A stretch of 64,000 nt of DNA from Tubulanus polymorphus (Eukaryota > Animalia > Nemertea), in the NCBI RefSeq assembly GCF_964204645.1, contig NC_134031.1, positions 5,394,001 to 5,458,000 of the forward strand. Reading direction: 5' to 3'. Positions 14,413-50,361 of the stretch are shown one piece after another. The notes below the pieces were generated by a model, which ran no database searches, was not told the DNA's origin, and was given only the letters and a program-made list of their open reading frames with translations. Within the stretch, counting starts at the first letter, position 1. Every line of letters begins with the position of its first letter. The translations under genes and the position numbers were made by a program.

Positions 14413-17400
14413 TTAAGCGATACTCGAGTCTGCAGCTCGAAGTTCCGACGTATTGTCCGTGTCAGAACACGAAACCTGATAAACTCTCACTTCGTGACGA
14501 CCGTAAAAGCCGCATTGAGTTAAAACCAGTCTGCCGTCGTCGTCCATTTCGACCGACATCGGATACTGTAACCCGTCCCTCTCCGACAACAAATCCCGTA
14601 GATATTTACCGAACGGGTCGAACACGGCGATTCGGTGATTATCGCTATCGGCAATAGCGATATTACCGTCTAAATCTAAACACAACCCGCGCGGACAGTT
14701 CAACTTTCCCTGCCCGAATCGGTACAGCGGACGGCCGTTCTTATTGTAGACTTTCACGCAATTGTTCGTCGAATCCGTTACGATGATGTTATCGTCCTCG
14801 TCGACGCATAAAAAGTGCGGACTCGGAAGATCGACGTCGCTGAATATTCGGGCGCAGAATTTATTGATTAGAATACCGTCGGGACTGTGCACGGTAATGA
14901 ACGAGCGTTCGCTGTCGCACATCACTACGTTACCGTTGCTCATCACGGCGATTCCGGCAGGGTATTTGAACAAACCGTGGCCGAAACGATTCACCAACGA
15001 ACCGTTCTCATTGAACACCTTAACCCCGTTCGATTCCTCGTCGCTGACGTAGACGAGTCCGTCGACGGGGTTAGAAATGACGCGCTTAGGTTTGACGCAA
15101 TCCAGTCCGATATAGCGAACGAACTTTCCATCGTTTTTGCTGAGAATTTGAAGTCGTTTGTTGTTTTTATCGCAGACGATCACGTCACCGCTCGGCAGGA
15201 AATTGGCGTGTACGGGCCAATCGAACTGTGCCCTGCCTTCACCCCGCCCTTCGACGTGCCACAGTAATTCGCAATTCCACACTTCTTTACACTTCTCGCT
15301 TTCGTAAATAAAATCGAATACGACTTTTTCGGGACCGTCTAGTCCTACGGTGCTGTAGCGAGCTAACAGCGATCGCGGACTCAACCAGAGATCTCCGTCG
15401 TTCGATTTCAGCGCATTTCGCGTGATATCTTGCTCCACTATAGAAATCATATCTTCGCTTACGGCGGCGATCTGATCATCGGCACATTTGTCTAAAATCT
15501 CCTCGACGATGTCGTGATCAACTTTAAGAGCGGCGTATCTGCCGTACAGACGGTTTTGTTGTCTCATGAGCTGAGCTAACGTGGGCCCGAACCGCTCGTC
15601 CAATTTTAGTCTTTCTTGTTCATAATCAACTGAAAAATTACCGAGAAACTTGAATCATTCTTTTATTCAGACCGACTGGTAGGGAAGCGTCCTGGGGCCG
15701 TATCTATAAGGGAAAGGTTTTTCGTGTAAGTTCCGAGTTTGTAATTCGCAAAAAATAGTTTTCTCAGTTAGAAGTGATTTTGGCGTTTTATTCCCAGTTA
15801 GTAACTTGAAATAAACTAGTAGTTAAAAGTGATTTGTAAGTTAATTCCGACTTTGTAACTGGGAATGAACAAAGTTTCCTCAGTTGAAAGTGATTTTCTG
15901 GATTATTCCGATATAGTAACTCGGATAAACCTCCAAATTTCATTTCGAGTTAGTTACAAACTCGGAATTAACCTTGAAAATTATTTCTGAAATTAATATG
16001 TCACCAGGACGCTTCCGTAAAATTGACATTTACCGATTTCACTGTTAATTCGTATTTGCAAATAAGAAATAAAAACCTTACAGAACAATTAATTAGTTTT
16101 ATCTAAACAAATATGTTAAACAAAAATAAAGATTGATCCGTAATCAAAACAAGTTTTACACGCTGAGTGAATTTCGCAATTTCTTATTTAGATAGTTGAG
16201 CCTCCAATGTGACATGGTGAAAAATTGTTTTTTTTTTTGTCCTGGGAACGAAATAATCTTTTTGTTCGAACGAAACACATTTCGTTCGACGGAAATGTTT
16301 TTCGTGGAAACTTATGAAAAATGAATTTATTATTAGTAAGTATAATCATCTTCGAAGCTGACCTTCATCTGGATATGCGCACGCAGCATCTCGACCTGGT
16401 TGTTCTCTGGTTGATTCCGATTGGTTGAAATCGGAACATTTTGCCTGCAAACTCGCTATATTATCGTAGTAATCCTTGTGAGTAACTTTTTCGGTGAGGG
16501 CGATTTGAAGTAGTTTGTTGTACAGTTCGCCGCATTTCCCGTTAAGAGTATTCATTAGTTGACGCAGATGACGCTTCTCGTGTTCGATGTGCTGGCTGCC
16601 GCAGACGGCGTTGTAAACCCCTGCAAAAACAATACGATATACACGTATACATGAGCGTGAACATAATATTGTTACATGTACTTGCAAATCTCGATGCATC
16701 AAATTAGGTAGCCAGCAGAAATAAGCCCCCGATCGATCAGTTGCTTTGCCGGTTCAGACTGGATACACTAAATCGGAACAGGAATTTCCAATTGTGTACT
16801 TTTTGTACTTAGTATTATTTGAACAAAACATTACGTAATGTTAAATGTCAACAAACTGTATCTGTACTTCGATTTCCGATTTACAAATGAGACCCCCTCT
16901 GTTTCGTTAAAAAAATGCGGAGAGGGCATTTGTTACATGGGATTCGAACCTACCACTGTACCAGATGGTGAACAGCATAACAGGATGTATAACTTAAGTA
17001 TCTAAAATCTCCTCCTTAATATAACATTTCCAATAACTATCAGTGTTTCACTGAAATTGATTTTCATTATTCTGACTAATATGGATTCGTATGATTGTGA
17101 TATTCAATTTCTAATATTCATAATATTTGTTATCATTAACTCTGTCTGTGATCGTCTATTTATTCTGTCAAGCTCAAAATTCATGTCATCAAACATTAGT
17201 AAACAGGACGTTATCAAACTGTTTGTTCGATGGGCAATACAAACAGCGAGTGCGGAGTTTATCACGATATATATCCAATAATTCCAGGGTCGGAATGAAC
17301 CATGTCTACATCATGCATATGTATATACACGTATATCATATACAGAATTTTCTATTGGATATTTTGTAACAACGTCAAAACCATAGCGAAATCCACAATA

Positions 17401-20669: not shown

Positions 20670-21662
20670 CTAAGGTTTTCTACAGCGCAACAGCAATTTC
20701 ATTTGTTTTCTGAAATTTTTGCTGTACACATAATAGAATATACCATTCACGGCCGAATTCAAGGCTTGAGTAACATCATTCACGAGCATGATCGGCCATA
20801 ATGTTTTGAACCCATAATGATCCATAATCGCCAAACCATTGTATAGCATATCAGGGAAAACTGACACCATGAATAAAGTGGATGCGACAAATACCATTCT
20901 GAGACCCGTTCCCCCATCTTGTTTGTTTTGCTTCGTGCCACCACCGGTCAGTTTTTTCCTACTTTTAGCGTGAATTTGTAGTTTTATTACCATGACGATG
21001 TTTAACAGTGGCACGATACCAAACGGTAGGTATGTAGAGAAAATATTCACCATCAAATACGAAGTTTCGGTTGGATTGTTAACCCTTTTGTTAGTGCGGA
21101 TGGGTATGCCGTACGTACATACGTTCATTACAAATACGATAATTCGGTCCTGCGCGCGATAAATAAACAGTCCAGTCCACGCGATTACGCAGACGGCTGA
21201 AAGTAGAAAACAACGTTTCAAATTCCAATATCTCTTAGCTTTCAGAGGGAATAAGATGTGGAGTGCGCGGTCGAACGTCACTATTAGGGTCAGACTGTTT
21301 CGAATGTTAGTGCTCCATTTTATGATAAGATTTCCCGCTATATTAAACTCTGGAGCCCCGAGATCCGTTTTCAAATACAGTCCTGCCTTTCCGTGGCGAA
21401 TCATTTTCAAGACCCAAATTAAATGATAATAGAAAATGTATCCGACGCAAGAGAAAGTGTCGAAAATAGCTAGTAACAATAAGACGAAATACGAAGTAGC
21501 GGAATCGTTCATTTTATGTAGTCGATATACCACGACTATAGTAACCGCGTTGGCAATGATGCCGAACCACGCGGTCGGTCCTATCACTGTCGATGAAACA
21601 AGGTTCCACACATCGTGACGATCGTTGAAGCACCAGTCAACAACTGTGGCGTTTAACTTCAT
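20670..21662 (-). CDS. Intronless class A GPCR (divergent FMRFamide-receptor-like / putative chemoreceptor)
   Basis: 330-aa ORF with seven hydrophobic segments: TM1 'GIIAN', TM2 'LAIFD', TM3 'TFDRALHILFPL', TM5 'LPFGIVPLLN', TM7 'NSAVNGIFYYVYSKNFR'. Confidence 0.88.
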   Translation of the reverse strand: MKLNATVVDWCFNDRHDVWNLVSSTVIGPTAWFGIIANAVTIVVVYRLHKMNDSATSYFVLLLLAIFDTFSCVGYIFYYHLIWVLKMIRHGKAGLYLKTDLGAPEFNIAGNLIIKWSTNIRNSLTLIVTFDRALHILFPLKAKRYWNLKRCFLLSAVCVIAWTGLFIYRAQDRIIVFVMNVCTYGIPIRTNKRVNNPTETSYLMVNIFSTYLPFGIVPLLNIVMVIKLQIHAKSRKKLTGGGTKQNKQDGGTGLRMVFVASTLFMVSVFPDMLYNGLAIMDHYGFKTLWPIMLVNDVTQALNSAVNGIFYYVYSKNFRKQMKLLLRCRKP

Positions 21663-33712: not shown

Positions 33713-34251
33713 TTGATCAGTATTAAATGTCTATATTCGGATCCAGAGATGGGTAGCTCCGAATTGTTACAAATCGCGGCATCCATATATAGAGCGAATG
33801 ATACGCGGGGCGGGGTGCTCTCCCCTAGCTCTCCCTCGTATTTCTAGAGGGTTGGATCAGATAACGGATAAGAACCAGTTTGTATCTTGATATTTCACGC
33901 AAGAAAAATTCCCAGAAGCAATATGAAAATGAAAAGCAATTTAGTCGCTCAACGAATTTCGGCCACCCAGTTGACTAAATCAGTAAGCTATCTGAATCGT
34001 GAGCCACCGGCCGCGACATCATTACAAAAACCATTGGATTGAAAGCTGATGATGTCCACATGCTATGGTTTCATAAGTTTTTCAGCCAGAATACTGCTGA
34101 ATTTGAAATATATGCGTGCACTGATTTAAGAGATAATGCCAATTGCAAATAAACTTGTTAAATATCAAATTCCCAATAAGGCCTATCGCCGCGAGGAGTA
34201 TTTGAAAAAAAAATCTGTTTATATTAATTGAGTAATCTGATCTGTTGTACA
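33713..34251 (+). repeat. Displaced upstream region of GPCR copy 1 (paralog of 48346-48831)
   Basis: Colinear similarity from ttgatcagtatt to aattgagtaatctgatctgttgtaca. In copy 2 this runs directly into ccgtatcttatcacgATG. Confidence 0.88.
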
Positions 34252-37200
34252 TTATGAGTTTTCCGGTTTGCTCCGGCTACCCGTACTGGCGGGGTAGTCT
34301 AGAGAGGCCAATGAAATCTCCGGTTTGCTGAACTACCCCTCTTTGCGGGGATGCGGTATGATGTTTGATCTGACAGTTTCAAGTGGTTAATGGCTGTTTC
34401 AAGTGCTTACAACGATGCTTATTACTTCGTGGTACATGGTGGTTTAAAAAAAGATTTCATAATAATACGCACACCGCGTGGGCTTCGTAAAAAGACCACT
34501 ACCTGTGGCCTTCACAAATTTTAATTGTCCTGTCCGATTTGGTTTCGTCCAAATGAGAGACTGCCTTTTCCAGTAAGGGCATTTTTGGATCACATCACTC
34601 AGGAAATGACTTGCGCTTTTCGGCCTCTTCGTCGGTTCCACATGTTTCATTTGAGCTATAGACCACAATGGCGACACCATCATGGTCAGAAACTGACCAA
34701 TTGAGATATCCCCGAGTCTCGAACACTTGACTTCGAATTTCGGAAATTTTTCAAGTCATGTTTGTTTTCAAACTAATGAAGAATCATTGCAAATTCATAA
34801 ACTGACCATCACTGACCACAACTGACCAATTCAAACTCCTTGAATTTGAAAACGATATACCGCGTTATGGTGTCAAACTATAAAGGATTCGCTATAGATA
34901 TTGAGAATTCATGAATTGACCATCACTGACCAATTCATGCTTACTATCATATCATCACCAACCTAACTATAAATACCCTGATACTAATTTACTCTTTTAA
35001 AACTAATTCATTTAAAGAGGAATTGCCAGTTAAGGAGTTTAAGGTAAATAATGTAAAGTGTCTGACAAGCGAGTATTATGTTAGTTCATGTTTTCTCCGC
35101 TATCGTTATACATAGGGGCAGCACTAGACGGTTTAGATCACTATTTTTATAGTGGCGGGCTCGTTTCAAATGCTTTATTTAATGAAACTATTCTCTTGAT
35201 TAAAGACTTTAAAGCCACTTTTTGTAGACATGATTCTCACTTTTCTTTCATACGATCTTTGATTCGGAGTCTGTAGATATTAATACAGTCCACGGGACGC
35301 CAATTCAAAGGGGCCACCACGGCTTCCGCTCGTCCCGCCCAGTCGAATCATCGAATCACCCCCCGGAGGCCGGGTGATTTGATACGATTTGAAGATGGTA
35401 GACTCACAAATTTGTTTCGAAAAACTGATATGAATGTCAAAACTGAAAGAGAAACCTGAAACTCATTCATAGGAAATAATTAATATTTTAAAAAGTGGGA
35501 CAGTATTTTGTCAGCCGTTTGTGGAACAACAGGCGTCAAATTCATCTGTGCTTTATCTTATTTGGAATACACGTGAACTAGCAAATTATGATTAGGAAAA
35601 TCGAATCTGATTTGACAAGATAAAGTTCGCCTATGTTATTCAAACAAAAATTATTAAAATTTAGTAGTCTCTGCTTCGCCAAGCGAGTGATCCCTCCACC
35701 AATTATAGTCAACTTACCAGACAGTTTTCAATAGTGAAAGATTTCAAATAAATACAAGGCTAAAAGCCGCGAGTTTTAGTCATCATTGGTCGGTCGATTT
35801 TCTTCTCATTTTACTTGGTTGGTTACTTTTGGTTGGTATCATGATTTACTTTTAATGGTTGTTACAATTTTGGTCGGTACTAATTTTACTTTTGGTCGGT
35901 ATTAGACGGCTTTTGGTTGGTATTAGACGGCTTTTAATCAGTATTGGACGGTTTTGATGCAATAAATATACGGATGCAATAAATTTTGAATTGAAGTGGA
36001 AATTCACCCTTGATGGCTATAGTGACAATCAAAAAAATTTCGCAATTACTCTTCGGCAGCAACACTCGCTTCTAACTGGTCAACAAGTGTCAGTGTGTCC
36101 GGTTTAAAGTGTTTAACTGTATTGCCTGATATAAGATTATCATATTTTGCGGACATACTCGTCTCCGCACCATGTTGATGGGAATAAAGGGTTGAAAAAA
36201 GAGGTGGATTGCAAGACAACAAAAAACCACTGACTGGTGAACTAATTAAGTTCAGAGAAGCTAATTAAGTAAACAAAAAGAGACTACAATTATATTTACT
36301 CTCATACAACAATTATACAAAATGCCAGGTTTGTGCTTGAGGAATTATAACTTAAGTTCCTCAAATACGTGGACTGATTTCAAAAATAATCCAATCATGG
36401 ACGTATAAACAATAAACTAGAGCTTATACGTCCATGGTCCAACGCGCAATTATCTAGGCTGTATCTGGACAACTAGAATTTTCGCTGCACCTTGTCTTAA
36501 ATAAAGATTTTCAAACATTATCAGTTCGCTCGCTCATTTAATACAACGCTATTTCAGGGTAAACATGACAATAATTTTACTATCGATAACTAATCACGTT
36601 TATAGCTGTTTAACATTCTTTCTAAAAAAGAGTAAAATGTATCTCCCAGATATTATCCCTAAAACAATTAACAGTTACAGCAGTGATAGGGTGTGATACA
36701 TAGGTAAAGGACGCGTGATCTTTCATCAGTTATTTGAAGCATTCTATCGAAACAGATATTTTTTAGTGTTTTTGGTTTAGTTAAGGTTTATGGTTATTTG
36801 TTTTGTTTATTACTGAGTCGATAGAACGCTTAAAACAACAACAGAAAAGGTCTCAAGAGGTTGGGAAACACGGAGAAGGTTGTTCTATGAAAAAAGAACC
36901 TTTAATAATTAGATTGAGTTGATTAGAAAAAATTCCCGATGATGAAGGCCTATATTAACTAATTGTTTGTTGGTTTTGTTTATTTTTTCATTACTTTATA
37001 ATTTCATTTGTTTTTTTGTATCATTTATTTTGTAGTTTTTATCTATTTTTTAAAATTATGTTCTCTGTATTTTGTACTATTTATTACTATTTACATCATC
37101 AGGATTTTGTAGCGGTGAAATTATGGCCTCACTTAAAAAAGTGCTACAAATTCACTGCTGCAGCTAAATAATCGCTTCCTAATTAAACACCCCGATTTGA

Positions 37201-38122
37201 AGTTAAGTGATCATTGAAAGCCGCTCAGCCTTATGATATGAATGACGATGATAGAAGTTAAAACAGCTATAAACAAAATTAAAACAATCAAAATCATTGC
37301 TGGCCATTATTATTTATTCCTTTATATTACAATATTCCTAGTATTACCTCTCATACCTCTGTGGATACAATGTACTACGATATAAGTTTCATATAACTAG
37401 CTAGGATCACCTACATGGAAGCACAATGCTAAAACCTGGCCCTTCACGTTTTGGCCAAGGAATCATTTTCAAAACATCTTTATTCAAAACCCATTAACTT
37501 GCTAGGCGAGTTTAGGAGTCTAAACTAATAACGTACCAACTTCCTTTATTGTGTTTAAAAGTTGCAACTGTTTAACTGACTACGCTCTCCCTTTTCAACA
37601 TTTAGGCTATGCAAATCATTAAATTATTTTCACTCTCAGGAAATATAAAATGAATCACTATTTCTAAGATTAATCGAATAAAGACCAATGAACTATGTCA
37701 TTATTACAAATCATTCTCAACTATGTTTAACTAAGGATGAAGATTATCTGAACTATCCTGTTGATTTCATATCTCAGTTTAGGAGTATTTCAACCGACTT
37801 ACGAGTCGAACCCAGACGCTGAATGCGATCAACACCATGAATTAATGGAGCGTAAATTTTATGAGACTCCAAGAAGGAACTTAAAGGACATGACTCCTCT
37901 GTTTACAAACCGAATTCAAATTATTCAAATATGAATAGTTCCTTCTCAGACCCAGAGCCCTAATTATCTAACTTCAATTTTCAATTATCAACATTAAAAC
38001 TATTTCTTCAGTTTATTCCGCTCCTTCAAATAGACAGTGATTTTTGTAAACCCATGTTACCCATCAGACTAGTTTGTAAAAAGGTAATACGCAAAATAAA
38101 TCAATACTTTACATATTCTTTA

Positions 38123-38345
38123 GTCTGTGCTGCCTGTCCTGAATAAGTGTTTATAAGATACGCATTGTCTGTGCTGCTCCTGAATAAGTGTTTATAAGAT
38201 ACGCATTGTCTGTGCTGCTCCTGAACAAGTGTTTATAAGATACGCAATGTCTGTGCTGCTCCTGAACAAGTGTTTATAAGATGCGTATTGTCTCTGCTGC
38301 TCCTGAATAATTGTTTATATATACCGGTAAGACACGCATTGTCTC
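38123..38345. repeat. Minisatellite, ~41-bp unit, ~5 copies
   Basis: gtctgtgctgctcctgaataagtgtttataagatacgcatt repeated. Confidence 0.93.
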
Positions 38346-38679
38346 TTCTCCACCTATTGAAAAAGAAATCCGTCATTGGGCGATAAACCGCTGCTGGATA
38401 AATTTCTCCTCTGGACTTCTAGGCCTATGCAGTCGAATTCAAGATGGTTCTTCTGTGGTAGTTGATGATTTCAATTCAAGATGGAATCTTCTGTTAGCTA
38501 TTCTAATCAGTACATTTTTCACCAGTACATCTTAGGCTGAGCATTTTCTTATAGATGTGATTAAGCTGAAATGAATAAAAGAAGATATCCTGTAATTAAA
38601 CAATATCATACAATATACACAATTCTTCATATACCATTAATAATAATAAATTCCATGTACCGTAAATCAATTTCATTTA

Positions 38680-39416
38680 GAATTTATCGCAATAATTCCA
38701 TCTATATTTAGTTACCTTTTATGATTGCTGGGTTGATGATTTGATTCTAGCTGGCTGTGCGCTGTTCCAGTTGGTCGATTTTGGACGAGTAGTTGATCTC
38801 AAGCTAGCTTTTCCATATAGTTGAAATTTAGCTGCAATGATTAAAAGAAGTTATCCTGTAATGACAAGTTTTTTCAATGAGAATTTATCGCAATAATTCC
38901 ATCTATATTAAGTTACCTTTTATGATTGCTGGGTTCGTTATCGGCGTGGAACATCTAAGTTGATTGGTTGATGATTTTGATTCTAGTTGACTGTGCGCTG
39001 TTCCAGTTGGTCGATTTTGGACGAGTAGTTGATCTCAAGCTGGGTTTTTCATATAGTTGAAATTTAGCTGCAATGATTAAAAGAAGTTATCCTGTTATGA
39101 CAAGTTTTTTCAATGAGAATTTATCGCAATAATTCCATCTATATTAAGTTACCTTTTATGATTGCTGGGTTCGTTATCGGCGTGGATCATCTAAGTTGAT
39201 TGGTTGATGATTTGATTCTAGTTGGCTGTGCGCTGTTCCAGTTGGTCGATTTTGGATGAGTAGTTGATCTCAAGCTGGGTTTTTTCATATAGTTGAAATT
39301 TAGCTGCAATGATTAAAAGAAGTTATCCTGTAATGACAAGTTTTTTCAATTAGAATTTATCGCAATAATTCCATCTATATTAAGTTACCTTTTATGATTG
39401 CTGGGTTCATTATCGA
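38680..39416 (-). repeat. Tandem ~236-bp repeats, each shaped like a minus-strand exon + intron
   Basis: Units start at 38680, 38881, 39117, 39353. Minus strand reads cttcttttaatcattgcAG|...cataaaag|GTaact. Confidence 0.85.
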
Positions 39417-39465
39417 CGAGGGTCTCCTATGTTGGTTGTCTAATTTTTACATATTTTTTTTCATA

Positions 39466-39843
39466 TAACTTTTTTTCTGCCTAATTTAATACATTGAGAT
39501 TTTGGAAATAACTATATTTTACAATATTTGGTCTTTTTTTCATGTAAATACTCCGAAAGTTTACAAGGTTGAATAATTTTGTCTAAGTTTTTTACATTTC
39601 ATGGGTCTTTTTTTCATGTAAATAGTCCGAAAGTTTACAAGGTTTAAAAATTTCGTCTAACTTTAATTTTCTTGGTCGTTTTCACTGTTTAAATAGTCGA
39701 AGCACATAAGCGATTGATTGGGGTTAACTTTTTTTCTGCCTAATTTAATACATTGAGATTTTTGAAATAACTATATTTTACAATATTTGGTCTTTTGTCA
39801 TGTAAATAGTCCGAAAGTTTACAAGGTTGAAAAATTTTGTCTA
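39466..39843. repeat. Interspersed direct repeats (115-bp block x2 plus partial copy)
   Basis: taacttttttttctgcctaatttaatacattgagatttt...ccgaaagtttacaaggtt at ~39466 and ~39725; partial copy at ~39605. Confidence 0.8.
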
Positions 39844-40529
39844 GTTTTATATTCAAATTCGGAAATCAAAGTACAGATATAGTTGTGTGATCGGGGGTCG
39901 ATTTTACATAAATTTCGTTTTCTTTAAAACCAAGCACATAATTGGAAAATCCGGTTCCGGTTCATTCAATTAATCTTCCAACCAGTCTGAACCGACAGGC
40001 GACTGATTGGGGTCAATTAAGTTGACTGCCTATTTTAATACATCAATATTTGGAATATCTATATTACAAGGTTGAAGATCACTTTGTACATTTTATGACT
40101 AGTTGATTAATAGTATAGCTGAAAAAAAGAGCAAAATCTTGTGAGCAGAAAATCCTTTCGAATATCACTGATCATGATTAACGTGTCAATTCATACATGG
40201 ACCGGAAAGTAGATTTTGATAATAGTCAATTATTAAACGATTGAATTAATTAATCTATATTCATTCTAGATTCATGATATTGATTATTATAGTTTAACAA
40301 CAATTCGGGTAAAGCATCTCTAGCTATCTTGAGGAATACCAGAGTTACAGCAAATTTAATAATGCATAATCAATCTGTTCAAATTTTTTTTGTACTGTAG
40401 TTTCTCTTCTTCTATCTTCAGAAATTCTTGATGTTTTTCTTCCATGGGTGCTAAACACCCAGCGGCCAGTAGACTTTTATTAAAACCCAGGCCCATCATA
40501 CAGTGCAAACTTGCTAGTAATATTGCCCC

Positions 40530-43040
40530 CTATATACATTTCGATTGTCAGCTTAACCATGTTCATATTATCAAATTAACTTCATCGTCAATTAATAAAC
40601 TTTAAGAGATACGTTTTCTACCCACAGATGGTGACATCTGTGCCCAGTAAATGGTATTCTCATCAATTTCAGTAATTCTAAATATTGCACGTAAAATATA
40701 TACAATGATCTTGTAATTATGATAATATAACTAACTAGAGTGAGTGCGCTGCCAGCATTGAGCACACTGATCCTATAAGCAACATGGTTCTACAGATTTA
40801 AGAAACCTTGAATCATCCCCACACCTTGACAAATCCAGAATTCTGCAAAGCCTCAATGATTTAATAAATCCAACGCACAAGAGAGAAAAGAGAGTTAAAA
40901 CACTGTATAGGGTATAGGCCTAAACCAATAGTTAATTATACAGTTGTCTTATCGACCCATATGGTTTGGATTTGAGCACTTTTACCTTATATGAAGATGC
41001 TGAGTTAATCTTTATCGTAGATACCTAATAAATCAATTAATGTCCTAGCTATAATTAAAATTGTCTCGGACAATAATTTATTTGGGGCTTGAAATTTCTA
41101 CACGAGAAGAATTTCAGATCCCGTATAAATTTGAATTCATCATTATTTCAACTGCTAATTTTGCATCAGAGCTTTTGATACCTAGCTTAACGAACCCAGA
41201 ATTCCCCAAAACCTAACTGATTCAACAGATCCTTCACACATGTGGCCCAGTTAGACACAGACAGCATTGCACAATACAGTTGTCTCATCCACTGCGCTAT
41301 TTTCTAAATAATTTTCACTTATATTCATTATATTGAATTAATTTTAACGAATTTTCTAGATATCTAAGCGATCCGTTAATTAGTCATCATACTAGCTACA
41401 TCTTAATTATCAGTCAACAATATTTATATTGAGCCTGAAAATCTACACGAGTAGAATTTCAGATGTGGTGAATTCATCACTATTTGAATTCATCAGAAAT
41501 TAAGATAAAAGCACATTTTGAGTGGTAAATTAGAAATTCCCTTATAGCCGAATTGCTATGTAATCTTTAGTTCTTTTATTATATCTTTTACAGTACACTG
41601 TGTATAAGGATCGAAAGACCATGTTGTGACCAGACCTCCCTGGTGCGGTGCAAGACATGATGCTGTAATATAGTTTGAAGGAGAGGGGTTAGTAAAAGAG
41701 AGCTATTAGCAAGAGGAATAAGAAGTTTAGGATATCCTGTCAGATTAAGGCTCTCAATCTGACATACACAGTGAAATTGAAATATTCTCCCTTCCAAATT
41801 CAGGAATGTATTTTTGCACAGATTTGTTTTATCTCCCTTCAATCGGAAGTAAATCTGCGTTAAATGAATTTGGCAATATGTATCAAAACTAATACAGCTG
41901 TATGACGACACAATAGGTTCACTTTAGATACAGATAAATTATTAATTTGCTCAGATACACATGTATCAGCTACATTTTAAATGTCAATGGACTTGAATTT
42001 AAAAAAAAATTTCACATAACAATTGAATTAACCTTAATTGTAGATATCTAAGTAATACATTAATGAGTAATTCATCTTAGCTATATTCTAATTGTCAGTT
42101 AATAAACTATATCTATTATGCGTCACTTGACACACAGTAGGCCTATGGCTTTTGGATATCATTTGAATCAGTAAGGTTTTGGTAAGTTTTGGCAATATTG
42201 AAGAGCATGACCAGTCGCCGTAAGTACGGCAGTTGGAGATATAAATACTGATCAGTCGATGAGACTGATTCACTTATTATATAGATATGCTCAAATATAC
42301 ATATATCAGCTATATCTCAATTGTCAGTTTAATGATATTTATAATGGACCTGTATCACATATAAATTATTTCATACATAGCATATAAATAGTTTTTGATC
42401 TTACATGGAATATTAAATTCATCTTAATTGTGGATATCTAAGCCATTGGTTAATGAGCAATTTTTCCTAGCTATATATATGATGATTGTCAGTTAAACAA
42501 TAATCATAGCCCAAAACAAGGCACAGAGTATGGCTCTGGGGAATGATTTGGATTAATTAAAGCTTTCTTTATTCTAGATTTATCAAAGTGCTGAGACCTA
42601 ATCACAGTTTCTAAAAGACCCGCAGTCCATAGTTTTCCCCATATATATTACACCAGATCTCGATAGAGCCCTAGACAATATTTTATACATCTTTCCCCCA
42701 GGAATTCATTAATGTAATGGGTAAAGCAGCATATAATATATACTGTAAAGTGCCCAAATTGTCCTATCTAAAGTGTCCTATCTATATCTTGATTGTCAGT
42801 TAAACAAGCTATATGAGGCCTGAAATATCTACCGTACATTCGGAAAATTTCACATAAGATATTGAATTTACCTTAATTGTACATACTTGAAAAATATTTT
42901 CATCAATAACTGACCAATCTACCTTTAATTATCAGACCAAAGAATAGTCAAGGGACCTCACTCAATCATTTCATCTAATATTGTAAATATTCAAGCAATC
43001 ATTGCCCTAGCTATATTTCAATTTACTTTAACCAATATAC
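40530..43040. repeat. Highly degenerate AT-rich repeat array
   Basis: Recurring blocks such as ttgaatt..ccttaattgtagatatctaag..ctagctata..attgtcagtt at ~41340, 42020, 42415, 42780-42880, 42980. Confidence 0.6.
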
Positions 43041-43491
43041 CGGCCATAGAGCTTCAATAAAGTAGTGCGGAGATGGTGAGCTTGACCAGCGTCTGTATCC
43101 TCACCAGTGCCTATGCATTCTACCCCAGATATGAAAAATCAACTTAGCTTTATGTATGTATGCATTCCTGTTGCCATGCAGGATGAGACTGCCAGGTTTG
43201 GTTGCTCAGGTCTTTCGGTGTTTGGTTCATTCAACGTGGAGTCTTTTGTGGGCACTTCTAGTGGGAAGATTTTAGATGGGCCTTTCCGGATTAACCTGAA
43301 ATGAGTAAAAGAACGATATTCTGTAGTTACACAATCCTTTCTGTATCATACAACGAAATTTACACATGTATCATATTAACTTTCAATATTGCTGAGTTCA
43401 GTGTTCTTCTGTAGTCGCCTTCAGCATCTTCTTCTTCATCTTGGGAGTCCTGAAATGAAAAAAAAAGAGAAGAGCGATGAAAACCTGGTAC

Positions 43492-44290
43492 GGAACAAAA
43501 CTAATATCCGAAAGCTTTTCAGCTCTCTGTCGCCGGTCACATGCCCAGAACACCAGACAATGACCCAGCCAGGAATATACTGCCCTCTACACGCCCTCAC
43601 ACAGAACGCGAAAACCAGGATGACGACGCCTTACTTTCACCATTTACCGACAGGGTGTGCCGGGTGACGTCAGTAACTGACAAACCTATCAAATTGCCCA
43701 AGCCAAAAATAGGGCAGTGCAACTGGATTGCCCAGACTAGCACTCAAAGGAAGACAAGACTTAATCCCGCCCGAAGCGACCCACAGGGAATCAATGAATA
43801 CTAACACTCAAAGGAAGACAGGGAAATTAATCCCTGCCCGAAACAATCCCTTAAAGGGAATCAATGAATGCTAGCACGCAAGCGATCCCGCAGTGAATCA
43901 ATGAATCCTAGCACGCAAAGGAAGACAGGGAAATTAATCCCTGCCCGAAGCAATCCCTTAAAAGGAATCAATGAATGCTAGAACGCAAAGGAAGACAAGA
44001 CTAAATCTTTGTCCGAAGCAATTCCTGAAAAGGAATCAATGAATACTAGTAGACAGTCCAGCTTTACCACTCCATTTTTAACCTGTGCAATCCGACTGAC
44101 TTGCCCGTCATTGACGTCACCCAGCACACTCTGTTGATACATGGGGAGAGTGAGGCCTCATCATCCTGGTTTTTGTGTTCCGTATGAGGGCGTGTAGAGG
44201 GCAGCCATTTCCTTACCGACTCTTTGTCTGACATCCTCGACATGTGACCGGCGAAGGAGAGCTGACGCTTTCAGACATTAGTTTTGTTCC
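43492..44290 (-). ncRNA. Candidate structured RNA: ~250-bp imperfect stem enclosing ~4.5 tandem ~65-70-nt structured modules
   Basis: Arms 43492-43740 and 44046-44290 are reverse complements. Most transition mismatches give G-U only on the minus strand. Loop modules show compensatory stem changes. Confidence 0.55.
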
Positions 44291-44949
44291 AGCAAACGTT
44301 GAAATTCGACAGAGAAATCGGCCCTGAAAAATAAAACGGGTTAATCCCTGAAAAATAGAACGGATAAATAAACACAGAACAGTACAGGACAGCACAGAGA
44401 CGAACAGTAACACATAAAACATAAAGACGTCGTTCCTCAGGAAGCAGGAACAGGAGCAGGAGCGGGAGCGCAGCGAAAATCGCCAGGAGGAGAATCCACG
44501 GTAGCAGCATGTTCACAGTGTGAGTGTGCAGAGGTGAATGGCCTATGCTTGTACTACACCGTGGTCAGCCGGTGACGTATTCAATAGGGCATGTGAATGC
44601 TATCAACAACTCTGAAAAACCACTATTGTGTCTCTATTGTTGAATGGATTTACCTTGAATACGCGCCAGTAGCCAGCCGAACCTATCGTGGAACTTTAAG
44701 GCCATATAAAATAAATTACTTGATTCTCGACTCTAGAATTTAGCGCCGCTTGGTTTTTTTCAGTCTGTTGCGGTCGGCTCCAGTCAGTCGGCTCCGGTCG
44801 TACTCTTCGAGCGTAAGTCGATCGTTCGTCTGGGGTCTTAACCTGCTGAAATGAAAGCAAGAAAACGAGTTCGATTTAAAAGGTTACAGTCCTCAAATAA
44901 TAAATACAGAATTAAATAAACCTTGAACGCTGGAGTCCAGACTTTTTGA

Positions 44950-45031
44950 AATAATTAATATTTTTAAAAGTGGGACAGGCATGTTTTGTGGAACAACAGA
45001 CGTCAAATTCATCTGTGTTTTCTATTTCTAC
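44950..45031. repeat. ~85-bp direct repeat of 35474-35555 (promoter-like on the minus strand)
   Basis: aataattaatatttt..aaaagtgggacag..tttgtggaacaacag(a/g)cgtcaaattcatctgtg in both places. Confidence 0.8.
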
Positions 45032-45498
45032 AAATCACTATTGAATTGTAAACAGTTGACACAGTGATAATTAAAAGTTAATTATTTCAATGGTATTTAT
45101 CTGCCAGTTTTGGGCAACTGCAGCCCCGGGTCAGTGATGGACTGGTCAGGATTGACTGACCCCACCTGAAAAAGAAACTTTGACCAATTTTGCATTTTGT
45201 AACAAGATGTGGCTCGAGCGGGATGCTGCGATCGTATTCCGCCACCAAAAAGAGGAAAACAATTTTAACTCGTACAGAATAGATCATTTTACCCGGCGGG
45301 CAAATCAAATTGCTCACGCGGGTTCAACTTTGAACCGGTCGAATCGTGCGAGTCCGGGTACTAACCGGACATCATTTTTTCCACACGTTCAACACTTGCC
45401 AATTTGACAAGACAGGTAAAAAGAATTACTAGGTCTTGGTCCTACGAAAAAATAGATATCGTAGCAGCATTTCTATGAACCGACCGTATCTTATCACG

Positions 45499-47005
45499 AT
45501 GAATACATCGTCGGAAACTTTCACTCTACTTTCACCGGCGCCACTCGGCTTCCTGTTGGTCGGTATCATCGGCACGTTGGCGAATTCACTGGTCATAGTA
45601 GTTTTCATCGGCGTTCCATCGATGTTGTTAAAACTTACAAACATTTATATCTTGAATCAATCGCTAATTGACGGGACTTTGTCCATAATTCTGATCGGCA
45701 CGAGCGTCCGCGAACATATGATGTTCGCACCGAGCGACTTCGACGGCAAAGTGTTGTTTTGCCGGCTTATTTTGTCTCGCGTATTTCTATGGAGCTTGCT
45801 TTACAGTTCCAGCTACAATCTCATCATCATGTCACTCGAAAAATACGTAGCTATCTGCCACCCCTTTAAACACGAGCGATTTTTTTCTCGGAACCGGGTT
45901 TACGTGACGCTGGTAATTGCTTGGATGTTCGGTTTAATATGGGGTATGCAGAACGCCATCACGACTGTTTACATCGACGGGCGATGTATGTTCAACTCCG
46001 TATGGCTGGGGCACTGGAAAGAGGCTTTCGCCTATATGAATTTACCCGTTCAACTGGTTGTTCCTGTCGCTGTCATGGGATATGTTTACTTCGCTATCGC
46101 AAAAACAATTTCCAATAGCATGAAGGTAGGATTGATAGCTATTAGCCGAAATGATGTTGTTATCGAAACGGTGCATAAAGCAATATAAAGAATATCCTCG
46201 TCAAATTCTTCTCAGGAAAGGTTTTTACGGACCATAATAGTAATTGAATTCAATTACGATAATTTTCCCATATTTATGGATGATCTTATACCCTTAAACA
46301 TTGAGTAAAATCCTATTGTCATCCAGGCAAAGATTTTCCTATAAGTGAACATTAAGACTGTCTCTTTATTAGTAGAAGTTGTCAATTGATAGGTTTTTCC
46401 CATTCACTAGAATCCTAACGGAACAATCATCATATATAGGCCTACCAAGGACTCCCTATTCATTCACGTTCGATCGGTATTTTAGTCCTTTCAAAATTCG
46501 GGTGAACAGACTTTTGGAGCCTTTTGAACTACAAGATATATTAATCATTTATCTTGTACACACGAGTCAGTTCAAATTACACTCAAATAGGTCACAAAAT
46601 ACGAATAAAATATGTATAAAAGACAATCTTTGGTTATTTTTTAAAAAATGGGGAAAGTGAATGAGTTATTAGTTATCGGAGGCTCGCACTATATTTCTAC
46701 CACAGGCTGTCGGTGAGACGACCGGAAGTGACGTTGACCACCGGAATTCGAAGTTGCAACGCGCGCAAAAGAATGTCATACGCACTTTGGTCATCGTGTT
46801 TATTTCATTTCTGTTCTGTTGGTCCTGGAACACGATATACATAGCGATGTTTTATTTCCACGTACCGGGCGTCAATCTGAACAACATCTTCTATTTCTCG
46901 ACTGTAATCATCGCGTATTCTAACTCTAGTTGGAATCCGTTCATATATTGTTTTGCGTATGCCGAGTTTAGGAACGCTCTCGTGAAGGTGTTTCGTTGTG
47001 GATAA
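45499..47005 (+). CDS. Class A GPCR, galanin/allatostatin-receptor-like, copy 1; exons 45499-46125, 46706-47005 (308 aa)
   Basis: TM1 'GTLANSLV', TM2 'LNQSLID', TM3 'SLEKYVAICHP', TM6 'FLFCWSW', TM7 'NSSWNPFIYCF'. Phase-0 intron in ICL3. Confidence 0.92.
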
Positions 47006-48846
47006 ACCTGGCGTAGTAGATATTAAACAACTTTTGGAGATCACAATCGTCGCATTTTTCCCTTATCTCTGGAACACGTGATTCCCTTCAAATTCCCTTC
47101 AAAAAACGTTGTAAAAAACGTTTCATCTGCTCTTAAAGGAAAAAAACGTTGTAACGACGAAAGAGCATAAGTAAAATCCATGATTGCTATGCAGTAGTGT
47201 TCATTACTATATGATATCTTCACTATTTCAATGTACTTCTACGGGTTTTCGATGTGGGCAATTGGACATGACTTTAACTGAGCCCTATGCCTTTCATCTT
47301 AACGTTAAAGGTTCGAGAAGAACAGCTGTATGAAATCGGTAATTCATGGTTTAATGTGAAGTGCAATACATACAAAGGATCTGGCGCGACCAATCGGATC
47401 GCTGAATCTTTATCAATGTATCATTAGTCGAATTTGATGGAGACTTTAGATCTCATGAACAAAGAACGAAACCAAGTGGAAATTATGAAAGTTAAGTTTC
47501 TGGAAATGACCACCAAATAATGTTGACTCCCATATCACCTATAATGGTGCTATGTAGAAATATCGAAAAAAAGACTTGATAGAAAACCCGAGGATTGTAA
47601 CTGATGATTATAGCACAAGAAGATTGTGGTCAAATATCTAATTTATGATAATTGCTTTTCATTTCAAATATTTCTTTCATTGTCATTGTAAATGAAACGG
47701 ATTCTATTGATATTCATTAACTGACTGATTTCCCTGATAAACCTGAAGTGGTTAATTTCATTGTGCACCAAAGAAAACGTTAAACGTTAGATTTTGAGTA
47801 ACATTTCATTACCAGCATCAGCTCCAATCTACAGCCTACTGTTGACGTTAAACTCTTACAATACAATACCATACATAAGGGATCAATATATATCTAAAAT
47901 ATATAAGCTTTTTTGTTTATCAATCTAAAAAGAATTAACAGATATAAAACATTATAAAAAACATAAGTTGAAATTTGGGGACCAAAATGGCACCACGCGC
48001 CATTTCAGAAATCCTTCCTTCTCGTAATGTCTACATCCTCGAATACCCTACTACTGCCCACATGTGGATTCTGAGTCTCCCAAGCAAATAAAGGTGCGCC
48101 CCCATTTGGATATTCTGACTCATTAGAATGGAGGGACAATTTTGTGCCTGAAAAACTCCTAAATATTGATTTATATTACAACGTTAAATTATTATTTCGT
48201 CGAATAAAGTGGTTAATAAAGTGTTTTAGCGATTTGATTCAATAATTCCCTGATACGGATATTTTGCGGCTCCTGCCCCGACACAGATATTCCCGGTTTG
48301 GATATAAGAGCGCACTGCCGCGATATGGAGCTACCCTTACCTCGATTGATCAGTATTGAATGTCTATACTCAGATCCAGAGAAGGGTAGCTCCGAGTGTA
48401 TACAAATCGCGGCATCCATGTAGAACAAATGGTGTGGGCTGGGTGCTCCCCTTTGATCAGATGAACGGATTAAAACGGATTTTCACGGAAGAAAAATTCC
48501 CAGAAACAATTTTATTTCCATGAAAAGCAATTTAATCCATGCCCAAACCAGGCGGCGGCCGACGAATTTCTACCAGTTGTGAAGGTGCATGGCTTTTTCT
48601 AAGAATTTTAATACCGCGACACTACCATTACAAGCATGGATTGTAAACTGCTGGTACCCAGGTTTTTCAGCCAGAGTACTGCTGATACTAATTTGAAGTA
48701 AAGCGTGCACTGTAAGCCAATATGTCAATATTGCGAATAAACTTTATAAATATCAAATTCTCAATTAAACCGTTGCAAGAACTATCTGAAAAAAATGTTT
48801 ATATAAATTGAGTAATCTGATCTGTTGTACACCGTATCTTATCACG

Positions 48847-50361
48847 ATGAATACATCGTCGGAAACTTTCACTCTACTCTCACCGGCGCCACTCGGCTTC
48901 CTGATGGTCGGTATCATCGGGACGTTGGCGAATTCACTGGTCATAGTAGTTTTCATCAGCGTTCCATCGATGTTATTGAAACTTACAAACATCTATATCT
49001 TGAATCAATCGCTAATTGACGGGACTTTGTCCATAATTCTGATCGGCACGAGCGTCCGCGAACATATGATGTTCGCACCGAGCGACTTCGACGGCAAAGT
49101 GTTGTTTTGCCGGCTTATTTTGTCTCGCGTATTTCTATGGAGCTTGCTTTACAGTTCCAGCTACAATCTCGTCATCATGTCACTCGAAAAATACGTAGCT
49201 ATCTGCCACCCTTTTAAACACGAGCGATTTTTTTCTCGGAGCCGGGTTTTCGTGACGCTGGTAATTGCTTGGATGTTCGGTTTAATATGGGGTATGCAGA
49301 ACGCCATCACGACTGTTTACATCGACGGGCGATGTATGTTCAACTCCGTATGGCTGGGGCACTGGAAGGAGGCTTTCGCCTATATGAATTTACCCGTTCA
49401 ACTGGTTGTTCCTGTCGCTGTCATGGGATATGTTTACATCGCTATCGCAAAAACAATTTCCAATAGCATGAAGGTAGGGTTGATAACTATAAGCCGAAAT
49501 AATGTGGTTATCGTAACAATATAAAAAATATCCTCGTCAAATTCTTCTCAGGAAACGTTTTTACGAACCACAATAGTAATTGAATTCGTGAGTTAACGAT
49601 AATTTTTCCATCTTTGTGGCTGATCTTATACCCTTAAACATTGAGTAAAAACCTATTGTCATCCAGGCAAAGATTTTCATATAAGTGAACATCAAGACCG
49701 TCCTCTACTAGTAGAAGTTGTCGATTGATAGGTTTTTCCCATTTACTAAAATCCTCATGGAACAATCATCATATATAGGCCTACCAACGACTCCCTATTC
49801 ATTCACGTTCGATCAGTATTTTAGTCCTTTCAAAATTCGGGTGAACAGACTTTTGAAGCCTTTTGAGCTATAAGATGTATTTATCATTTATCTTGTACAC
49901 ACGAGTCAGTTCAAATTACACCCACATAGGTCACAACATAAATAACATACGAATAAAAAATGTATAAAAGACCATCTTTGGTTATTTCTTAGATAATGGG
50001 GAAAGTGAATGAGTTATTAGTTATCGGAGGCTCGCACTATTTGCTTTTATTTTTAACACAGGCTGTCGGTGAGACGACCGGAAGTGACGTTGACCACCGG
50101 AATTCGAAGTTGCAACGCGCGCAAAAGAATGTCATACGCACTTTGGTCATCGTGTTTATTTCATTTCTGTTCTGTTGGTCCTGGAACACGATATACATAA
50201 CGATGTTTTATTTCCGCGTACCGGGCGTCAATCTGAATAACATCTTCTATTTCTCGACTGTAATCATCGCGTATTCTAACTCTAGTTGGAATCCGTTCAT
50301 ATATTGTTTCGCGTATGCCGAGTTTAAGAACGCTCTCTTGAAAGTGTTTTGCTGTGGATAA
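48847..50361 (+). CDS. Class A GPCR, galanin/allatostatin-receptor-like, copy 2; exons 48847-49473, 50062-50361 (308 aa)
   Basis: Near-identical paralog of copy 1 with the same exon lengths (627 + 300 nt). Confidence 0.92.

Follow-up and report, generated by a model that had tools for sequence, protein, structure and literature searches.

The window analysed here is a 64,000-nt stretch of the genome of the nemertean Tubulanus polymorphus (positions 5,394,001 to 5,458,000 of contig NC_134031.1). Two single-exon ORFs lie on its minus strand, one for an NHL-repeat protein of 396 aa (14413-15603) and one for a Srw/rhodopsin-type GPCR of 330 aa (20670-21662). Both are ordinary animal genes and, together with the GPCR pair described next, mark the window as metazoan. 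Another GPCR ORF (45436-46188) has a tandem paralogue (48831-50356, 93.7% identical to 45483-47000) that retains an empty site at 48830/48831. Comparison with this site delimits a composite, ORF-less insertion of 11,231 bp (34252-45482, minus strand) just upstream of the GPCR ORF. The insertion carries a long foldback, which is the subject of this analysis.

The ends of the carrier were read at both insertion junctions and at 14 further 3' ends (L061-L074). Insertion took place without target duplication, with an overlap of only 1 nt, and no LTRs, terminal inverted repeats or poly(A) tail were seen in the insertion. Collinear copies of the insertion are present elsewhere in the genome, and its 5' 320 nt are absent from these other copies. 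On the minus strand its 3' end coincides with that of a terminal module of ~683 bp (34250-34932, minus strand), which is separately abundant. This module is much commoner than the rest of the insertion and has a different 3' flank in each copy. It always ends in ...CTCATAATG after two short hairpins, an end also read as ...CCGGAAAACTCATAATG. A direct repeat of ~90 nt occurs twice within the insertion (35473-35563 and 44948-45027). Internal tandem arrays with units of 41, 236 and 74 bp were observed at 38123-38319, 38731-39415 and 39517-39664. A unit of ~58 bp, single in the insertion (near 40025-40072), forms kilobase-long satellite arrays at C7:2.465-2.471 Mb, C9:13.257 Mb and C9:14.58 Mb.

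Foldback and tandem array

The arms of the foldback were located by inverted-repeat detection. The 5' arm (44054-44292) and the 3' arm (43490-43736), both read on the minus strand, form a stem of ~240 bp that encloses a loop of ~310 nt, the whole being a hairpin of ~800 nt. The arms are 75-80% complementary as DNA, and the minus-strand RNA pairs nearly throughout. Arm-arm pairs on this strand comprise 180 Watson-Crick, 31 G.U, 11 A.C and 17 other combinations, the A.C pairs being those that would be G.U on the plus strand. The whole hairpin (803 nt) folds to -468 kcal/mol on the minus strand as against -344 kcal/mol on the plus strand. With DNA energy parameters the difference shrinks to -187 versus -169. 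This small difference indicates that the asymmetry is specific to G.U pairing of the RNA type, and a fold of single-stranded DNA is less likely than one of RNA. The content of G+T is 63% in the array, 54% in the two arms together, 49% in the rest of the insertion, 50% in the downstream flank and 56% in the upstream flank. A regional compositional skew was rejected as an explanation, the enrichment being local to the hairpin. Each arm contains a CRE-like palindrome, TGACGTCA, and the two occurrences (about 44105-44112 and about 43666-43673) lie at corresponding places.

The apical loop of the foldback is a tandem array (43737-44049, minus strand) that constitutes its branched apical domain. The sequence-only reading had described minus-strand units of ~65-70 nt here, and five are indeed present head-to-tail: U1 (43982-44049, 68 nt), U2 (43912-43981, 70 nt), U3 (43875-43911, 37 nt), U4 (43805-43874, 70 nt) and U5 (43741-43804, 64 nt), followed by a closing CTAG (43737-43740). 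On the minus strand each unit is laid out as a 5' strand CTAGYATTCA, a short hairpin A, a linker GCTTC, a longer hairpin B, a linker TCCTT and a 3' strand TG(A/C)GTG. The 3' strand, together with the CTAG of the next unit, pairs with the 5' strand. One unit had been reported to lack hairpin B cleanly; this is U3, and the loss is compatible with a clean deletion between CTT repeats. The first and last 10 nt of a unit, said to pair, do so perfectly in U4 and with one or two mismatches in U2 and U1.

When 93 distinct units from 40 copies were fitted to a three-way-junction model, 93% of the cells were standard pairs. When the partner was slid by 1-3 columns, this value fell to 32-54%. The array alone folds to -128.3 kcal/mol on the minus strand (z -8.1, none of 100 shuffles as good) and to -69.8 kcal/mol on the plus strand (z -2.2). 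Equally good folding of the plus strand, which would have spoken against the proposal of a strand-specific structure, is thus not seen. The unit pairing and the z-scores indicate that the array is a real feature, beyond chance and strand-specific. The proposal that the units are three-way junctions holds for U2 (z -4.2) and U4 (z -5.4), but U1 (z -0.8) and U5 (z -1.7) do not fold significantly in this way when taken singly. Compensatory change between units was found in part: one two-sided change is clear (G-C to A-U in hairpin B), while the others are one-sided exchanges between Watson-Crick and G.U pairs. The junction linkers, described as almost invariant, are so within the window but are not significantly more conserved among 35 copies, in which 4 of 24 linker sites vary as compared with 29 of 116 sites in stems and loops (p 0.44). 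For this reason the linkers were rejected as specially conserved protein sites.

No known family accounts for the unit, in agreement with the earlier statement that none was recognised. A search of the whole window against Rfam 15 gave no match at gathering score; over 43400-44400 the best matches scored 12-17 bits against thresholds of 36-103, and a tRNA/tmRNA search returned nothing. The suggestion of a catalytic module gained no support, as 43700-44100 contains no CUGANGA on either strand and matches no ribozyme family. A hammerhead or other small self-cleaving ribozyme was rejected, a catalytic core being absent. No paper on this repeat, or on repeats of Tubulanus polymorphus, was found in the literature.

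Copies, subfamilies and flanks

A DNA search with the foldback gave 173 candidates, of which the best 40 were scored. A search with a translated arm gave 319, and all 150 of the best that were scored match. Since each element has two arms, the 319 candidates point to well over 100 copies. The copies are spread over at least 12 contigs of this 268-Mb genome; those sampled are the best-scoring 40-150, all paralogues of one genome. The subfamily of the window, A, is represented by 35 aligned copies that are 91-96% identical. In the older subfamilies B (L041-L059) and C (L075-L094) the flanks are 78-92% and the arms 79-88% identical to the window. Homology between copies extends kilobases beyond the outer ends of both arms, and the foldback is not an element by itself.

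The foldback and its strand asymmetry are kept in every sampled subfamily, mostly at ~800 nt and at more than 1 kb in two copies. The majority sequence of B folds to -448 on the sense strand versus -332, and the 19 individual C copies, without exception, to about -430 versus -320. The apical domain of B and C is a short CTAG-delimited tandem array whose outer strands are unchanged (CTAGTTTCATTG ... TGAGTGCTAG). Its interior is different in these sister subfamilies, in which hairpin A reads TGTC-CTTGT-GACA and hairpin B is replaced, and single B units fold no better than shuffles. The outer CUAG-closed helix is the sole part of the unit conserved across subfamilies. Conservation across subfamilies thus extends to the rod and to a modular apical domain closed by CUAG; it does not extend to the three-way junction itself, which characterises one subfamily. 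All five units are copied together, as a block, and copies with fewer units are known, most of them with three.

A covariance model built on the unit gave 146 instances, nearly all in foldback loci already known. A few further matches were obtained (C6:9084060-9084242, C12:1876089, C10:9978246 and C9:11439468). The notion of a repeated, free-standing module was not supported by this search: among the 150 candidates scored, the unit was found only inside the repeat family. With no stand-alone unit among these 150, nothing indicates an independent RNA gene family. Nor are the units independent of one another: together they make up the loop of a hairpin of ~800 nt within a multi-copy 11-kb repeat. 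The feature is a repeat-borne hairpin tip and not a new array of independent RNA modules.

The family shares an upstream flank (44293-44726, minus strand) and a downstream flank (42770-43489, minus strand). The hairpin is flanked by an acceptor-like ...tttttcag/GG at 44322 and a donor-like ...TACCAG/GTTTTC at 43485. A splice-acceptor-like motif, TTCTTTTAYTCATTTCAG, was seen to recur on the minus strand at 43296-43313 and 43450-43467, both in the downstream flank, at 44846-44863 and in the 236-bp tandem array at 38.5-39.4 kb. Different sequence modules come after this motif in other copies (e.g. L025), which suggests modular recombination or an exon-like organisation. Splicing was rejected as the origin of deletion variants: the junction of one variant, L008, shows microhomology and not GT...AG.

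An ORF of ~146 aa overlaps the 5' arm (about 44516 to about 44064, minus strand). Its start, which has the look of a signal peptide (MLPWILLLAIFAALPLL...), lies in the upstream flank. The frame is open in most A-subfamily copies (also in L003:2085-2570) and has a stop in B. Non-synonymous and synonymous changes stand at 67:30, with 65:29 expected by chance, and the in-frame length changes fall in a hexamer microsatellite. The product has no Pfam match and no homologue in the length range searched of 5.8 billion proteins, and exact-protein look-ups in public assemblies gave no match. In view of the stop in B and the want of coding constraint and of homologues, the ORF was rejected as a gene and is probably fortuitous.

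Variation at paired positions

The effect of variants on pairing was scored in the 35 copies of subfamily A. Pairs were taken from the fold of the A majority sequence, so that no single copy was privileged, and transitions at Watson-Crick pairs were counted as making either G.U or A.C. Private variants, present in one copy, are neutral (G.U to A.C 44:46). Among variants present in at least two copies the ratio is 46:25 (p 0.017), and among those in at least four copies it is 22:5 (p 0.0015). In the array only, private variants stand at 10:12 and shared ones at 13:2. As private variants mostly arose after insertion and shared ones derive from the lineages that made copies, the contrast indicates selection on those lineages.

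Strand-biased mutation, whether A>G of the ADAR type or C>T in an intermediate that is single-stranded, was considered as a source of this excess and rejected. The spectrum polarised with the sister subfamily as outgroup is strand-symmetric in the hairpin and its flanks: C>T matches G>A, and on the sense strand A>G is not commoner than T>C, if anything rarer. With a symmetric mutation spectrum, the excess of G.U points to selection on the RNA fold.

A consensus fold of 58 copies from the three subfamilies with RNAalifold reached -230.8 kcal/mol with 220 pairs in sense, as compared with -109.5 kcal/mol and 136 pairs in antisense. Well-supported two-sided changes were found at 12 arm pairs and 12 array pairs as against 0-5 in slid controls, a contrast that is somewhat flattering because RNAalifold picks the structure that maximises covariation, and a part of the double changes in the array may stem from misalignment, because the array regions of A and B align poorly. 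Between the A and B majority sequences the arms differ by 18 one-sided changes between Watson-Crick and G.U pairs, by four double changes, all of which stay paired, and by 12 disruptive changes. All of these comparisons are among paralogues of one genome, so that the events are few and variants shared by descent or gene conversion are not fully independent. The earlier observation that stems vary yet stay paired, often through G-U, is supported. The structure is real and strand-specific, and its pairing has probably been under selection on one strand.

Candidate roles of the hairpin and class of the carrier

The reading we prefer, for which the chances appear to us evenly divided, is that the array forms the modular branched tip of an ~800-nt, G.U-rich hairpin in the minus-strand RNA of a non-coding repeat. 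The carrier would be a gene-like, non-coding repeat of ~10 kb, now dispersed at more than 100 sites of the genome. In each unit CUAGYAUUCA would serve as the 5' strand and UGAGUGCUAG as the 3' strand, and these could pair within or between units. In the consensus fold the rod is lengthened by pairing between the first unit (5' strand) and the last unit (3' strand), and the inner units are nested inside it. Since the outer strands are identical in all units, units can be gained or lost without unfolding the rod. Such gain and loss would proceed by unequal recombination, copies with three and with five units being in existence. In the subfamily of the window U2 and U4 would close on themselves as three-way junctions. 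The hairpin may act in cis on the element's own minus-strand transcript, in its stability, handling or copying, and so aid the making of new copies. We give this role slightly less than an even chance; it is suggested by the fact that the elements that multiplied kept the fold. Binding of a protein, or localisation, by the array RNA, as proposed from the sequence alone, is a possible function.

The main rival to a role in cis is processing to small RNAs. Here the minus-strand transcript would fold as a hairpin-RNA precursor with the array as a mere terminal loop. Dicing to endogenous siRNAs, or entry into the piRNA pathway, would yield small RNAs that silence its own family. A stem of ~240 bp is of typical length for hairpin-RNA loci, and G.U wobble weakens the DNA palindrome yet keeps the RNA duplex; in plant transgenes, G.U wobble in the hairpin prevents self-silencing of the locus (PMC9263138). 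Among the best 40 and 150 candidates scored, the arms match only copies of the family itself, as a self-silencing precursor would have it, and show no homology outside the repeat family that would mark a target gene. However, self-silencing should be selected against in lineages that multiply, yet it is there that pairing is preferentially kept. Pairing is also kept between subfamilies whose arms are 12-21% divergent, and the loop is structured and covarying, which a Dicer substrate does not need. We regard this precursor as rather unlikely, although no other rival is stronger. More doubtful still is a host-like transcription unit, either a long non-coding RNA or a decayed gene, that became multi-copy by segmental duplication and in which the hairpin would be an exon or intron; its structure would then serve that RNA, for instance in splicing, stability or localisation, and not transposition. 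The acceptor-like 44322 and the donor-like 43485 bracket the hairpin, and acceptor-like motifs recur in the repeat, as that account would have it. But the copies lie on at least 12 contigs and the 11.2-kb insertion is clean against the paralogous empty site, and this dispersal and clean insertion are the behaviour of a mobile element. Moreover, the ORF over the 5' arm is without coding constraint and the deletion in variant L008 is not bounded by GT...AG.

An origin without any RNA function, as a decaying inverted duplication of DNA with slippage repeats at its centre and inherited palindromy, is highly improbable. Good folding is to be expected of any tandem units that contain palindromes, gene conversion between the arms may produce changes that look like covariation, and variation at the level of the units is mostly one-sided. 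Nevertheless, under neutral decay G.U and A.C should be equally frequent and the two strands should fold equally well, where 31 against 11 and -468 against -344 were observed. The same asymmetry is seen in every sampled subfamily with a strand-symmetric mutation spectrum, and private variants are neutral (44:46) whereas shared ones are not (22:5). Going further than the preferred hairpin tip, one may picture a new selfish non-coding element that needs a large modular RNA domain to copy itself and whose array recruits a host or partner protein. This we consider unlikely. The domain would then consist of the 240-bp wobble-rich rod and, as its cap, an expandable array of CUAG-closed junction modules. 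If this were true, the unit would count as a structured RNA module that is new and has no curated relative.

Long hairpins in repeats are usually dismissed as decaying inverted duplications or accidental Dicer substrates. At this repeat a single genome provides an internal control: private mutations are neutral to pairing, and those inherited by multiple copies preserve it, on one strand only. The contrast argues that the retention of an 800-nt RNA fold by a mobile non-coding repeat reflects the importance of that fold to the repeat itself. If RNA data confirm the minus-strand transcript, the family would offer a tractable case of how RNA structure serves non-coding elements in spreading or in managing host silencing, and of G.U wobble that allows a long RNA duplex without a fragile DNA palindrome.

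Long-inverted-repeat loci are catalogued in LIRBase (PMC8728187). The foldback resembles the hpRNA loci that give rise to endogenous siRNAs in Drosophila in having a stem of several hundred nucleotides derived from an inverted duplication and in being putatively read on one strand. Unlike such single loci, it occurs in over 100 copies, each carried by a mobile non-coding repeat. It further differs from them in its stem with ~15% G.U pairs, in its structured, repeat-built apical domain of 310 nt, and in that no trans target gene was found for its arms among the candidates scored. In retrozymes and viroid-like rod RNAs a highly paired rod made partly of tandem units is likewise found, but the hairpin, unlike retrozymes, carries no hammerhead or other ribozyme.

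Non-autonomous retroelements also contain conserved RNA structure, as in the internal domains of LARD and TRIM elements and the 3' stem-loops of LINEs and SINEs. The repeat is like these in being non-coding and multi-copy, in having modules with a common 3' end and a transcript that apparently needs the fold. It is unlike them in that no LTRs, poly(A) tail or target duplication were seen. A derivative of an LTR retrotransposon (LARD/TRIM) was rejected, as terminal direct repeats and a 4-6-bp target duplication are absent. FB transposons and MITEs share with the foldback long inverted repeats with short tandem repeats in multiple copies. Here, in contrast, the inverted repeat is internal, with homology running for kilobases on both sides in all copies. 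The tandem repeats occupy the loop instead of the arms; no target duplication accompanies the arms, whose complementarity as DNA is only 75-80%. A foldback transposon or MITE was rejected on these grounds: the inverted repeats are not the termini, homology between copies passes both arm ends, and target duplication is lacking.

The insertion is in part like Helitrons: it has a composite non-coding body with internal tandem repeats, no target duplication, and short hairpins ~11 nt before a sharp 3' end, and one way of reading the junction would permit a 5' TC. Neither the CTRR end nor the A/T target of Helitrons fits, as the 3' end is ...CATAATG, the site is not A/T, and the 5' 320 nt are unshared. 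The end of the ~683-bp module, taken by itself, looks Helitron-like or like the tail of a LINE or SINE.
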